Shown: positions 18,158 to 25,979 of the stretch, in pieces
Position numbering within the stretch: the first letter of the stretch is position 1
How the letters are laid out: every line of letters begins with the position of its first letter
Notes under the pieces: generated by a model
What the model was told of the DNA's origin: nothing
The model's database searches: none
Seen by the model: only the letters and a program-made list of their open reading frames with translations
From: Guillardia theta nucleomorph
Lineage: Eukaryota; Protista; Cryptophyta
Direction of reading: 5' to 3'
NCBI GenBank assembly: GCA_000002975.1
Contig: AF165818.4
Coordinates: forward strand, 90,001-122,000
DNA: 32,000 nt
Made by a program: the position numbers and the translations under genes

Positions 18158-19333
18158 TCAAACATTAGTTCTAATAAACCTTTTCATTGTGGAATTATTT
18201 GATTTTTTAAATAATTCTATATCATAAAAAACCTGGATTATTTTATTTAAATTTTTAGTTTTTATTATTATTATATTATTATTATTATGAAATTTATAGT
18301 CAATAAGAATCAATAAAATTGTAGTTAGATTTCTTTGCTTCAATAAATTTAATAATTTAGGCGTAATAATACTAAATTTCTTCAAAAAATAATTGGTTAT
18401 ATAAATTAAATTGAATCTATGAATATAATTTTCAAAATTAAAAGTAAAATTTAAAAAATAGAAATCATTACAATTATATCTCAATAGCGATTTTTTTTTT
18501 TTTGAAGAAAAATTTTTAAAGATGAGTATCAAAATAGGTAATAATAATACTTCCTTAAATATAGAAAGCTTATTGAGAAACTTTAGATCTAAATTTTCTG
18601 CATTATTTATTATACAAATACCTTTTTTAATAGTAAAATTAGATGTATGAAAATATTTTTTTAAGTAAAAACACAAATCATTTTTAAAAAAAGGATTTAA
18701 ATTGTTTGGTAAATATAGGTCTTCGATAGAATATCGATAAATTATTTTTTTTCTACTAAAGATTTTTCCTCTGGTTAAACTAAATAACTTTCGATTAAAA
18801 TTATCTGAAAAAAAAGACAATTTATTTTTATTTCTAACAATGAAAATTTCACTGTTTTTTAAATTAATAATAATATTATCTCCTACATGTGGTTTTCTTT
18901 TGTTAAAATTAATCCATAACTTCTTTTTTAATTTGATTTTTAATCCTTGATCGTTGTGAATTATGTATATAGTTACAATTTTATCATTATTATTTTTATT
19001 GATTATCTGGATTATTTTACCTTGAATGTATAGTAAAAATTTTTTTGTTTCTATACCAATACAATTTTGAAATTCTCTGATAAATGAATTTTTTTTTAAT
19101 AATTTTTTTTTAATTTCAGACGAATCGAGAATTTTAATAGGACAAGTTCTTGAAAATTTTTTTATGATTTGATTTATTAAAGATTTTGAATTTTCAGATT
19201 CATTATCAGTGAAAGAAATTTTAAGTATAATATCCCCTTCGGTTTGAAATGTTTTTATCAATTTAAATAAAAAATTTAATTTTTTATTTGTATAAAAATG
19301 ATTTTTCATTAATTCTATAAAGAATTTTGACAT
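18158..19333 (-). CDS. Degenerate RuvB-like (TIP49/Rvb1/Rvb2) protein
   Basis: CPIKILDSSEI, FQNCIGI, IQGKI, HVGDNIII, RGKIFSRKKII...SIEDL and GICIINNAENLDL...PILIL are collinear with TIP49 PF...GSEI, FRKSIGI, EGEV, AGDVI.I, GE..K.K.....LH.D and GVLFIDEVHMLDI...PI. Confidence 0.72.
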   Translation of the reverse strand: MSKFFIELMKNHFYTNKKLNFLFKLIKTFQTEGDIILKISFTDNESENSKSLINQIIKKFSRTCPIKILDSSEIKKKLLKKNSFIREFQNCIGIETKKFLLYIQGKIIQIINKNNNDKIVTIYIIHNDQGLKIKLKKKLWINFNKRKPHVGDNIIINLKNSEIFIVRNKNKLSFFSDNFNRKLFSLTRGKIFSRKKIIYRYSIEDLYLPNNLNPFFKNDLCFYLKKYFHTSNFTIKKGICIINNAENLDLKFLNKLSIFKEVLLLPILILIFKNFSSKKKKSLLRYNCNDFYFLNFTFNFENYIHRFNLIYITNYFLKKFSIITPKLLNLLKQRNLTTILLILIDYKFHNNNNIIIIKTKNLNKIIQVFYDIELFKKSNNSTMKRFIRTNV

Positions 19334-19360: not shown

Positions 19361-20287
19361 ATGATTCAAAATATAACTTTGAATCTGATCATCGAGAATT
19401 TTCTTTCACTATTGAAAACTGAGAATAAAATGATTTCTATACTAATTTATTTTAATAAAGTAAGGAAGTGTTATGCAAAAAAAAATAAAATCAGAACTTT
19501 AAGAAACAAATTTTTCTTTATTAAATTCAATTTTGGAAAAAAAATAAATACCAATCTAATAAAAAAAAATTTACTAAACATATCTTTAATATTATTTAGA
19601 AGATTGGAGTTCAACTACAGCTATGTAAAATTTGAAACAAGTCAAAATACTGTATATGAAAATATTTTATTAAATAATAAAAATTTATTAGAATTTATCT
19701 TATATTTCATTATAGAAAGAATTATTAAAAAAAAAATTCAAAAAAAATATTTATATTTAAGAAAATTTTGTTTACTAGAAAGTTTTCTGTCAAATTTTTA
19801 TTTAAAATCAAAAAAAAATATTATAAAAAACAATTTCATTGAAGATAGACTCGGTGAAAAGATCTCATATTATAAATCAAATTTTAATAAGTATATCGAA
19901 TCAATGATAAACAAAGTCATAAAATGTTTTTTAAAAGTTGTTGACAATAAATGCTTAATTTTAGAAAATAAAAAAAAAAGTTTAACTAGTTTGGATTTTA
20001 TTTCTATTGATTTCATAGAAAAAAAACTTCCCGAATTTGTTTATCAAATTTGTAAAAAATCTAAAAAATTTTTTTTGCACCAATTTTTCATCTGCTCGAT
20101 TGAAAAAACATTTTCTTCTTATAAAACAATTATTTTCCCATGTTCTCATTTAAATTCTTTTTCTAGTATTATTTTGAATTTTTTTTTATTTAAAAACATA
20201 AATAAAAAATATTGCGATTTCCTAAAATGCGATTATTGCCAATCTTATTTCACTATCTTTAATTTATATTCATTAAATTTTTTTTAA
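19361..20287 (+). CDS. RMND5/Gid2-like degenerate RING protein
   Basis: The C-terminus LP...LHQFFICS...FPCSHLNS...LKCDYCQ...LNFF* matches the RMND5 pattern LP...YHSIFACP...LVCGHIIS...LKCPYCP...IFF*. Confidence 0.6.
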   Translation: MIQNITLNLIIENFLSLLKTENKMISILIYFNKVRKCYAKKNKIRTLRNKFFFIKFNFGKKINTNLIKKNLLNISLILFRRLEFNYSYVKFETSQNTVYENILLNNKNLLEFILYFIIERIIKKKIQKKYLYLRKFCLLESFLSNFYLKSKKNIIKNNFIEDRLGEKISYYKSNFNKYIESMINKVIKCFLKVVDNKCLILENKKKSLTSLDFISIDFIEKKLPEFVYQICKKSKKFFLHQFFICSIEKTFSSYKTIIFPCSHLNSFSSIILNFFLFKNINKKYCDFLKCDYCQSYFTIFNLYSLNFF

Positions 20288-21200
20288 AATAACAATTTTT
20301 TTGTTTTAATATTGAATAATATATACTTTGAATTTTCAAAAAAAAACTCTTCTGATTTGATTTTAACAAGTTTAATATGACTAAACATGACATGAAATTA
20401 GTTTTAATATTCAAATAATTACTTTTTTTTTTATTCAATGATTCACTAAAATATTTCATACTTAGTTTTTGTTTGTTTTTTATAAGATTGTAATTTTTTT
20501 TTTTAAAAATTAGATTATTTTGAATTTCTGTTCTTGCAAATTTGAAACTCAAAAAATTAAATGTAAAAATTTCTAAATTAGATACTCTATTATCTAAAAA
20601 ACTGTTAATAATGTAAAAATTGAATATATATTTTCGATACCAAAGTATTAAGAATTTTCCAATTTTAAATTCTATATAATTAGTAAATTTTAAATCATTT
20701 ATATATTTTAAAATGATATCTAATTTATTCATAATTTCTCTCAATATTTTTATGATTATAGATTCTGAACTAATGAAAACTGAACAACATTTATTTTTTT
20801 TTTTTACATTTAATCTTGTTAGCAATTTATTTACTGATTTTAAATTTTTGTAGTAAAATATTTGAAATCTAAATTTTGAATTTAAGTTATGTTTTATGAA
20901 TAAATATTTTTCAGTTGAACAAAATTTGTTAAAAAATAACTTATAGATAAATATTTTTTTGAATATCTTAGAATGGAGTTTAAACTTAATAAATCTAAAG
21001 CTCATACCTAATTTCTCAAACTTAAGAAAAAAGCACAATTTTAAGTAGTTAAATAAAAAAAATGCTCTCAACAAAATTTCTATTTTTAATTTAAATGTAG
21101 AATTTTTATTTTTTAAATAAAATCTTTGATAATTATTTTTGAAAAAATTTAAATGAATTTTTTTTATTTTATCAGAGTTCTCATCGTGTCTAATAATCAT
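20259..21200 (-). CDS. Hypothetical protein (313 aa ORFan)
   Basis: ATG-started ORF with a 29-nt tail-to-tail overlap. It has only a faint SRP68-like pattern. Confidence 0.7.
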   Translation of the reverse strand: MIIRHDENSDKIKKIHLNFFKNNYQRFYLKNKNSTFKLKIEILLRAFFLFNYLKLCFFLKFEKLGMSFRFIKFKLHSKIFKKIFIYKLFFNKFCSTEKYLFIKHNLNSKFRFQIFYYKNLKSVNKLLTRLNVKKKNKCCSVFISSESIIIKILREIMNKLDIILKYINDLKFTNYIEFKIGKFLILWYRKYIFNFYIINSFLDNRVSNLEIFTFNFLSFKFARTEIQNNLIFKKKNYNLIKNKQKLSMKYFSESLNKKKSNYLNIKTNFMSCLVILNLLKSNQKSFFLKIQSIYYSILKQKNCYFKKNLMNIN

Positions 21201-21276: not shown

Positions 21277-21996
21277 TTAATCTAATCTTAAAATAGAATT
21301 TTCTACTAATATTCCTTTTTTAGACACAATAAATAATTGTAATATATCACCCATGTCGACTTGTTTATTACATAATGTTGAAAATATGATTTTTATCAGA
21401 GAAACAACTTGTAAAATAGTTTTATAATTTCTATCATTAGGTATTTTTCTTTCTTCGATATAATCCATAATACATTGAGCCGATGATTGACAATTTCCTA
21501 CAGTAGAAGCGTGATTACAATCAAAGCTTCCGATTGCATCGTATGTATAATTCGATGCTTTACCGAGTTCATTTATTCCAGTTAAAATATTGAATGTATA
21601 AAATGGAAAAAATCTTCTCGAATACAATAAAGAAGAAGTTAGATACACAATCCCATTTAAATTTAATTCAGTATTGTTTAAATATTTTAATCTGAAAATT
21701 TCATTTCTCAGTTTTTGATGCAAAATATTAATATCTGAAATCATACCAGAACTACCTAACAAGCATAAATTAGATATTTTTAAAATCCTGAGATTAAGTC
21801 GGGAAGGAATTGAATAACCCATAGAAATTCTTGTATCTGAAGCCATGACACAAAACTTATTACCTGTTATTGCTAAAACTAAACCCCCATTATTTTGATA
21901 TGGGTCAAAATTTCGATTTAAACTTTTAAAATTTAGATTATATGTTTTAATATTGAAATTAAGTTTTTTAATCACAAAATCCCAATATCTGATCAT
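21277..21996 (-). CDS. PSMB1: 20S proteasome subunit beta6 (Pre7/PSMB1)
   Basis: FDPYQNNGG, ASDTR, LYSRRFFPFY, YDAIGS, GDILQ and terminal LRLD. Confidence 0.95.
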   Translation of the reverse strand: MIRYWDFVIKKLNFNIKTYNLNFKSLNRNFDPYQNNGGLVLAITGNKFCVMASDTRISMGYSIPSRLNLRILKISNLCLLGSSGMISDINILHQKLRNEIFRLKYLNNTELNLNGIVYLTSSLLYSRRFFPFYTFNILTGINELGKASNYTYDAIGSFDCNHASTVGNCQSSAQCIMDYIEERKIPNDRNYKTILQVVSLIKIIFSTLCNKQVDMGDILQLFIVSKKGILVENSILRLD

Positions 21997-25064: not shown

Positions 25065-25979
25065 ATGAGATTAAACTATTGCATATACAATATCCTAGAA
25101 TCAAATAATGACTATGGAGACTTAAATGAAAATTTAAAAAAAAATAAGATTTTTGAAACAAGACATCAAAATAAATTTATAATTTCTAGATTTATATCTT
25201 ATTTTTTATATTTTCATAGTAACAGATTCTTTGATGTAAAAAAAAAAATCATTAAGTTAAGTTTAGGTAATAGAATTAAAAATTTACTTATATTTATTAA
25301 TTATCTAGTTCTTAAAATTTTTAAGATAAATTCGGCATTATTTTTTCCAAGTTTAGATCTAACATTGTTGTTATTTGAAAAAATTATTCTTCTTAAAAAA
25401 TTGTTATTATATTCAAAAAAATATAATAAAACATCTACTAAATTATTTGAATGTAATAATATACCCAATACAAAAAAAATTTTAAAGAATTCAATAAATA
25501 TAATCAAAATTATAAATAAAATTAATACTCGTAAGTCTTTGAATAAAAAAATTTTTAACTACAGAAAATTTTTTTTAAAATTTATATCAAAACTAGATTT
25601 TAAATTTAACAATAATGTTATGGAAAAATTCGAAATAAAAGATAAATTTATTATACATTTTATATTTTTTTTTATTTTTAATGGTAACTTAGATATTTGT
25701 AATATAATAAATAGAGTTTTAAAATTTTTTTATTCTAATAACAATCGTTTTAATCTAGAATTAGAAAAAATTTATTTAATCATTGCTATGAAAAATACTT
25801 GTGAACATTTTTTGATAAAATTTTTTTTTTTAGAAGGCTTCGTTGATCTCTATAGAAGATTAAAAATTAAAAAAATATTTTTATCATCTAAAAAAGAGCA
25901 AAAAAAAATAATTTTTTCTTGGAAAAATATCGAGATTTATAATGTTGCACTTGAACATAAGTTTAAAAAAAATTATTGA
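25065..25979 (+). CDS. Hypothetical protein (304 aa ORFan)
   Basis: ATG-started ORF that fills the gap. No family recognised. Confidence 0.7.
   Translation: MRLNYCIYNILESNNDYGDLNENLKKNKIFETRHQNKFIISRFISYFLYFHSNRFFDVKKKIIKLSLGNRIKNLLIFINYLVLKIFKINSALFFPSLDLTLLLFEKIILLKKLLLYSKKYNKTSTKLFECNNIPNTKKILKNSINIIKIINKINTRKSLNKKIFNYRKFFLKFISKLDFKFNNNVMEKFEIKDKFIIHFIFFFIFNGNLDICNIINRVLKFFYSNNNRFNLELEKIYLIIAMKNTCEHFLIKFFFLEGFVDLYRRLKIKKIFLSSKKEQKKIIFSWKNIEIYNVALEHKFKKNY

Follow-up and report, generated by a model that had tools for sequence, protein, structure and literature searches.

In U-box and SP-RING domains (Nse2, PIAS), the cross-brace fold is built with one zinc ion or none, a hydrophobic residue stands two positions after the first zinc ligand (C1+2), and polar residues replace some of the ligands. 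CHIP and Nse2 carry the finger at the C-terminus, after a helical region. In both RING and U-box domains, the hydrophobic residue at C1+2 touches ubiquitin-conjugating enzymes (E2s). The RING of Rmnd5/Gid2, from the GID/CTLH ubiquitin ligases (E3s), was assigned by Francis et al. to the RING-S/T type, which has one cysteine and serine at zinc site 1, an intact site 2, and one bound zinc (PMC3797097). The Rmnd5 logo of that study contains C1, serine at ligand positions 2, 5, and 6, C3, H4, C7, and C8, and prolines are strongly conserved at logo positions 2, 13-14, and, after C7, 42. The study also lists proteins of Apicomplexa that have only the Rmnd5-like RING, and proteins of stramenopiles that have only the RanBPM-like SPRY domain. 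For the periplastid ubiquitin system, the E3 side has been described explicitly as unresolved (PMC12412216). About half of the genes of nucleomorphs are ORFans, very few of which have a functional handle. Here, we describe one of them, the open reading frame (ORF) ORF308 from the nucleomorph of the cryptophyte Guillardia theta. It is a real, transcribed, and syntenic nucleomorph gene, and it now has a conserved C-terminal motif on which selection is concentrated. With about even confidence, judged from its sequence, we read ORF308 as a putative degenerate RING-type E3 module, not classified further, of the periplastid/nucleomorph ubiquitin system.

The analyzed window is a stretch of 32,000 nucleotides (G000:C1:90001-122000, contig AF165818.4) of a genome of 551,264 bp, which consists of 3 contigs with about 17-32% GC and is roughly 20% GC overall. 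Positions are those of the window unless another contig is named. The parts of ORF308 are:

19361-20287, plus strand: ORF308 coding sequence, 308 codons and stop, ATG start; an ORFan that has orthologues at the same position in nucleomorphs of other cryptophytes.
19361-20086, plus strand: N-terminal region, residues 1-242, predicted mostly helical, rich in K, I, L, F, and N, weakly constrained; a recognizable domain was not found in it.
20087-20239, plus strand: RING-like core, residues 243-293, F243-I244-C245(C1)-x-I247-x-K249 ... C261(C3)-x-H263(H4)-x2-S266(position 5)-x2-S269(position 6)-I270 ... C285, C290(C7)-x2-C293(C8).
20240-20284, plus strand: C-terminal tail of 15 residues that closes with FF; the convergent ORF313 overlaps the last 9 codons of the tail with its 3' end.

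Transcription of ORF308 is documented by stranded RNA-seq. Raw reads of run X13 cover positions 19370-20054 at a depth of 1.6-5.7, and they are oriented opposite to the reads over the neighboring minus-strand TIP49-like gene, as expected for a plus-strand transcript. Probable transcriptome contigs from other runs span the whole of ORF308. Over the last 230 nucleotides, the X13 reads have the orientation of ORF313 only, which is not significant, as 6% of the run was read. These reads in ORF313 orientation reach across the RING-coding end of ORF308.

The last 90 residues of ORF308 contain H240-x2-F243-x-C245, C261-x-H263-x2-S266, K289-C290-x-Y-C293, and a terminal FF. Both the reading frame and these residues are present as quoted in a preliminary description of the locus. 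The protein has ten cysteines and two histidines, one of the latter being H263. When ORF308 was shuffled 100,000 times with its composition kept, the pattern C-x-[IVL]-x(10-20)-C-x-H-x(10-45)-C-x2-C arose 6 times, and it never did in 100,000 when serines at H+3 and H+6 were included. The same regular expression was run on the window and 21 other loci, translated in six frames (~130 kb), and it matches ORF308 and its orthologues alone. The motif is thus not an artefact of composition, because it is rare in shuffles and confined to the ORF308 family within this ~130 kb. A degenerate DNA pattern for the motif has ORF308 as its sole match in the window (0 expected); elsewhere it gave 5 chance matches in viral contigs, each with stop codons.

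The motif can be written in terms of the RING formula, with C245 as ligand 1, C261 and H263 as ligands 3 and 4, and S266 and S269 at the positions of ligands 5 and 6. A later cysteine pair, C290/C293 in G. theta, can act as ligands 7 and 8. The order and spacing of the ligands, as well as the hydrophobic residue at C1+2 (I247), are those of generic RING and U-box domains. The distances of 15 from C1 to C3 and 20-26 from H4 to C7 lie inside the RING formula quoted in PMC3797097. As judged from the sequence, the pattern would describe a finger that lacks zinc site 1 and keeps site 2, and it fits the one-zinc RING-S/T type.

When ORF308 itself was used as the query, no homologue other than itself was found in a 5.8-billion word search or a 1.84-billion phmmer search. 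Its orthologues were reached by way of the adjacent proteasome B6 gene, which was used to fetch nucleomorph contigs. The neighboring genes are:

18158-19333, minus strand: TIP49/RuvBL-like gene (ORF391), divergent, 27 bp from the start of ORF308, Pfam TIP49 27.2 bits; synteny anchor.
20259-21200, minus strand: ORF313, a convergent ORFan that separates ORF308 from the proteasome beta-6 gene; considered for synteny only.
21277-21996, minus strand: proteasome beta-type subunit B6; synteny anchor for finding related nucleomorph contigs.

The local order is kept in contig L005 of Baffinella frigidus CCMP2293, where B6 is followed by an ORFan, a convergent ORF of 314 residues, and a head-to-head TIP49. 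A profile search built from ORF308 and this Baffinella protein added one more sequence. The two orthologues are:

L005 3861-4805, minus strand: orthologue P0019 of Baffinella, 314 residues, identified by synteny.
L017 775-1713, plus strand: orthologue P0020 of a metagenome relative, 312 residues, identified with the two-orthologue profile; its head-to-head neighbor is a TIP49 fragment.

The head-to-head TIP49 arrangement is common to G. theta, L005, and L017. The convergent 3' overlap of the ORF308 orthologue with the downstream ORFan is kept as well; it measures 29 bp in G. theta (20259-20287) and 54 bp in Baffinella (L005 3861-3914). Metagenome scans with the ORF308-family alignment, and with an N-terminal alignment of TIP49 for the synteny route, found nothing. 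In the other nucleomorph contigs reached through B6 (L002, L003, L009-L016, L018, L020, L038), the gene order is different or the contig ends too early. Since other cryptophyte nucleomorph lineages place B6 elsewhere, the B6-ORF308-TIP49 block is not universal. In four Tara marine metagenome contigs (L002, L003, L013, L018), the neighborhood of B6 consists of S8e, two ORFans, B6, FtsJ, an Rpt ATPase, and an E2.

Over its full length, ORF308 is no more similar to the two orthologues than shuffled sequences are (100/2000 and 119/2000 shuffles), and the C-terminal 90 residues are similar above shuffles (39/5000 for Baffinella, 0/5000 for P0020). In BLASTP, the aligned stretch is limited to 33 residues around the motif. 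Ten residues are invariant in the three proteins: F243, I244, C245, I247, K249, C261, H263, S266, S269, and I270. Conservation of cysteine and histidine in syntenic orthologues had been proposed in the preliminary description as a test of its assignment, and C245, C261, and H263 are indeed the same in all three. The longer string on which that assignment had been built was upheld for F243, C245, C261, H263, and S266; other elements vary, as H240 is F or Y in the orthologues, K-C-x-Y-C is replaced by C-x-C-C followed by FL-x-C-D-F, and the terminal FF is not conserved. Neither is the rest of the tail sequence.

The distribution of selection follows the same division of the protein. The ratio of nonsynonymous to synonymous substitution rates (dN/dS) was calculated from the two Baffinella-type genes, P0019 and P0020, at a dS of about 0.5. 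It is 0.47 for the whole gene, 0.66 for codons 1-225, 0.21 for the C-terminal domain (codons 226-314), and 0.105 for the motif, compared to 0.21 for the neighboring TIP49 and 0.14 for B6. The C-terminal domain of the family is constrained like housekeeping genes, the N-terminus is nearly free, and selection is concentrated on the motif, which is conserved. ORF308 resembles the syntenic ORFans/nORFs of cryptophyte nucleomorphs (Lane 2007; PMC3514955) in that position and size are kept with almost no similarity outside one motif. Unlike other syntenic nucleomorph ORFans, it has one short domain that is clearly conserved and constrained.

A RING-type fold of the C-terminus is likely, judged from the ligand pattern and from structural comparisons. 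In the ESM Atlas, the ten named clusters nearest to residues 232-308 of ORF308 are all RING families, with scores of 0.86-0.88; scores below 0.9 are a lead only, and shuffled proteins reach such scores a third of the time. The Atlas model of residues 232-308 aligns to RING domains with template modeling (TM) scores of 0.59-0.75 by query. Most of its structural neighbors are RINGs, including those of TRIM, Pex2/12, and NOSIP proteins and one CTLH + RING_UBOX cluster. In an hhalign comparison with the Bre1-like RING of ORF446, another protein of the same genome, C1, the C-G-H, and the next serine are in register (P 0.016, probability 2.8%). The single-sequence AlphaFold2 (AF2) model has a hairpin at residues 241-261 and a helix at 267-276, which is the beta-beta-alpha order of RINGs, with a predicted local distance difference test (pLDDT) value around 30. 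A predicted complex of the ORF308 C-terminus with zinc and the nucleomorph Ubc4 scored 0.00, which speaks neither for nor against binding.

Several results weigh against a RING. Pfam families were not matched at E<=10 by the C-terminal pieces of ORF308 and its orthologues, and neither phmmer nor profile searches of the PDB at E<=10 gave a match for these pieces of the three orthologues. Scans of the genome with the zf-RING_UBOX, zf-Nse, and U-box profiles did not recover ORF308, and they do recover ORF477/478 (Hrd1) and ORF446; the Bre1-like RING of the latter, equally AT-biased, is readily found by the same methods. The AF2 models reach a pLDDT of 34 from the single sequence and 36 with the three-sequence alignment. 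C7 is not followed by proline, and 26-27 residues separate H4 from C7, versus 17 in Bre1-type RINGs. A downstream cysteine cluster is present in all three orthologues, with two possible alignments and no unique match: either C290-x2-C293 of G. theta lies opposite the C-x-C-C of the Baffinella type, or the common element is FL-x-C-D-[FY], which all three share. The comparison includes only three sequences, from two lineages. The low Atlas scores belong to the same side of the balance.

The conserved motif may instead belong to a module other than a RING, which could bind metal, protein, or nucleic acid or be specific to the lineage, within a fast-evolving nucleomorph protein whose function is unrelated. 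This alternative would account for the failure of hidden Markov model (HMM), PDB, and AF2 approaches alike to recognize a RING, for Atlas scores within the range of shuffled proteins, and for a second cysteine pair that cannot be aligned. Against it, C1, the hydrophobic residue at +2, the C-x-H, the polar residues at +3 and +6, the hydrophobic residue at +7, and the later cysteine pair follow the RING/U-box register, the motif aligns in register with a RING of the nucleomorph genome that is bona fide, and all ten Atlas feature neighbors and most structural neighbors are RINGs. We consider a module other than a RING doubtful.

That ORF308 folds as a RING, binds zinc, recruits an E2, and acts as an E3 is inferred, and we propose the following mechanism. 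ORF308 would be a small soluble protein of the nucleomorph or periplastid space, with its functional part in the C-terminal 65 residues. These residues would form a degenerate cross-brace finger of the RING/U-box superfamily. Zinc site 1 would be lost, with C245 alone left and Ser266 and Ser269 at ligand positions 5 and 6, and site 2 would be kept by C261, H263, and the downstream cysteine pair (C290/C293 in G. theta). By analogy with SP-RING, U-box, and one-zinc RING-S/T domains, a ubiquitin-charged E2 may dock to the isoleucine at C1+2 and the helix after H263. Binding of a substrate or partner may fall to the helical N-terminus, which is poorly conserved. ORF308 would thus act as a lineage-restricted E3-type adaptor, not assignable to a subfamily, of the endosymbiont ubiquitin-proteasome system. 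The same nucleomorph genome encodes a proteasome, E2s, and further RING E3s. ORF308 is a reasonable E3 candidate because the E3 side of the periplastid system is unresolved and the Pex4-type E2 of the nucleomorph has no known partner.

The preliminary description had gone further and proposed ORF308 as a candidate RMND5/Gid2, the catalytic subunit of a remnant GID/CTLH ligase that would also use the nucleomorph RanBPM. The two fingers are indeed alike in the single cysteine of site 1, serines at positions 5 and 6, and the intact C3-x-H4...C7-x2-C8, so that C1, C3, H4, and both serines agree with the published Rmnd5 logo (PMC3797097). At ligand position 2, where the logo has serine, E or G is found. 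The finger of ORF308 lies at the very end of the protein, with only a short tail of ~15 residues and an aromatic end after it; solved RMND5A also ends about 14 residues past its RING (8pjn_b residues 334-391, in the alignment with the end of ORF446). The order of one-zinc ligands, their spacing, and Ser 5/6 support the proposal in part, and at the level of profiles neither RMND5 nor any other family is recognized. Searches of the PDB gave no match of ORF308 to RMND5A, which ORF446 reaches at E 0.013, and the zf-RING_UBOX profile is not matched. The spacer between the helix and C7 is longer than in Rmnd5/Gid2 (26-27 residues). Of the logo prolines, that at position 2 is S in G. theta and P in the Baffinella type; the PP before C3 (logo 13-14) is absent from all three orthologues, and the residue after C7 (logo 42) is D, I, or T. 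The variable H240 and K-C-x-Y-C also count against the identification.

The scaffold that would join ORF308 to such a complex was looked for as well. LisH, CTLH, and CRA gave no Pfam match at E<=10 in ORF308 or the Baffinella orthologue. The CTLH/CRA profile PF10607 had no match at E<=10 in the six-frame translation of the 551-kb nucleomorph genome; nor did the LisH profile PF08513, which matched nowhere, so the sensitivity of that scan is unproven. An ESM Atlas search with residues 1-236 returned nothing usable. The N-terminus, with its dN/dS of 0.66, is weakly constrained, unlike a scaffold domain. A MAEA partner would be expected as a second RING of this type; the ORF308-family profile found none in the nucleomorph genome.

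The remaining components that bear on a GID/CTLH ligase are:

L001 1354-2196 (G000:C2 about 25088-25930), minus strand: nucleomorph RanBPM, 280 residues, SPRY only in Pfam.
L036 1486-1920 (G000:C2:67366-67800), plus strand: Pex4-type E2, Arabidopsis PEX4 164.8 bits versus 113.7 for the next best PDB match.
L037 1480-1923, plus strand: Rad6-type E2, from the E2 search.

The claim that RanBPM is encoded in the nucleomorph is correct as far as its SPRY domain goes, which is genuinely of the RanBP9/10 type and conserved to an unusual degree (E 3e-51 against human RanBP9, 2e-8 against yeast Vid30/Gid1). The protein is SPRY-only and its alignment to RanBP9 stops at residue 243 of 280, before the LisH-CTLH-CRA part that joins RanBP9/Gid1 to the complex; the nucleomorph protein therefore lacks this part. 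RMND5/Gid2 is not known to contact the SPRY domain of Gid1 in solved GID complexes. Ubc8/UBE2H is the E2 used by GID. The E2s encoded in the nucleomorph are a Ubc4/5 type, which is subtelomeric, a Pex4 type, and a Rad6 type, with no Ubc8/UBE2H type and no Ubc9 (SUMO) type among them. This set agrees with PMC12412216, where the Pex4-type assignment was already reported. The ranbpm gene is, in addition, dispensable in C. paramecium (PMC9548191).

ORF308 is thus an improbable RMND5/Gid2. The closeness of the nucleomorph SPRY to human RanBP9/10, the existence of CTLH-less versions with the RING or the SPRY alone in red-plastid lineages (PMC3797097), and the CTLH + RING_UBOX cluster among the Atlas neighbors speak for it, in addition to the agreement with the logo and the C-terminal position. 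The GID reading draws solely on the RING-S/T pattern, and the pattern is not unique because ORF446 has also lost site 1 and has serine at position 5. A GID/CTLH ligase hidden in the nucleomorph is a striking claim, and it is not supported by the tests of sequence. A MAEA-like RING partner, a CTLH protein, and a UBE2H-type E2 were not found encoded in the nucleomorph genome; partners encoded in the nucleus and imported are conceivable. A variant without the LisH-CTLH-CRA scaffold, a 'mini-GID' in which ORF308 would provide a one-zinc RING of the Rmnd5 type and the SPRY-only RanBPM a RanBP9-type module for a substrate or partner, both in the periplastid space, is highly improbable. If true, it would have parallels in Apicomplexa, with proteins that carry the Rmnd5 RING alone, and in stramenopiles, with proteins that carry the RanBPM SPRY alone (PMC3797097), and it could supply a periplastid E3, possibly for the Pex4-type E2 or SELMA (PMC12412216).

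The nearest comparison within the genome is ORF446:

L030 1456-2796 (G000:C1 about 125284-126624), minus strand: ORF446, Bre1-like, 3.3 kb past the end of the window.

The RING of ORF446 and the C-termini of yeast Bre1 and human BRE1A/BRE1B align without gaps (E 5e-7). In ORF446, zinc site 1 is degenerate, with L at C2, S at C5, and F at C6. Zauner et al. 2019 named Gt1_446 a CBL homologue, and the main text of that paper does not mention Gt1_308 (PMC6559170). In the nucleomorphs of Cryptomonas, ubc2 and a 'bre1-like' gene have been listed (PMC9548191). Both ORF308 and ORF446 have a C-terminal RING or RING-like finger that has lost zinc site 1 and has serine at position 5, and C1-P-[IV], C-G-H, and the next serine align in register. 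Unlike ORF446, in which the spacings are 14 and 17 and which is seen by Pfam and by Bre1 chains of the PDB, ORF308 has spacings of 15 and 26 and is recognized by no profile.

Many eukaryotes use two Bre1 paralogues. ORF308 could accordingly be a second Bre1-type subunit (RNF40, HUB2, or Brl2-like) that would dimerize with ORF446 by way of the RING and the tail and ubiquitinate H2B with Rad6/Ubc2. The Rad6-type E2 encoded in the nucleomorph, the shared loss of zinc site 1 in the Bre1-like ORF446, the first half of the finger in register with it, and the common layout of helical N-termini, C-terminal RINGs, and tails of 14-15 residues are what such a pair would look like. The distances do not agree (C1-C3 15 versus 14, H4-C7 26 versus 17), the Bre1 match in the PDB at 5e-7 for ORF446 has no counterpart for ORF308, and the ORF308-family profile finds no paralogue in the genome, which makes a second Bre1 subunit remote.

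The C1-C3 spacing in Nse2 is 15, as in ORF308. A protein of ~300 residues with a helical N-terminus and a C-terminal one-zinc finger resembles Nse2, and ORF308 might be an Nse2/Mms21-type SP-RING SUMO ligase, or else a RING peroxin-like partner of the Pex4-type E2, which is encoded in the nucleomorph and has no known E3 (PMC12412216). One Atlas structural neighbor carries Pex2_Pex12. Unlike U-box and SP-RING proteins, ORF308 has no match to U-box, zf-Nse, or zf-RING_UBOX; the zf-Nse profile (PF11789) matches ORF446 only. A SUMO E2 of the Ubc9 type was not found among the nucleomorph E2s, and the smc genes reported from nucleomorphs are smc2 and smc4 only (PMC9548191). The probability of an Nse2-type or peroxin-like ORF308 is very small. 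A membrane RING of the Pex2/10/12 or ptE3P-like kind was considered separately and rejected, as the Pex2_Pex12 domain (PF04757) has no match in the nucleomorph genome and G. theta ORF308 has no clear hydrophobic segments (no Kyte-Doolittle peak above 1.4 in a 19-residue window).

Some further features of the neighborhood were noted. In Baffinella, an ORF of 66 residues (L005 2114-2314, minus strand), rich in cysteine and with several C-x2-C pairs, lies between B6 and the ORFan; it gives weak matches to DnaJ-CXXCXGXG and zinc-ribbon domains (E 0.03-0.16) and has no counterpart in the 77-bp spacer of G. theta. ORF391, the TIP49/RuvBL-like gene at 18158-19333 on the minus strand, is without the Walker A loop, which is present in the alignment of its Baffinella orthologue. 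One public assembly (X2) has a 1-nt deletion at 18491, inside ORF391.

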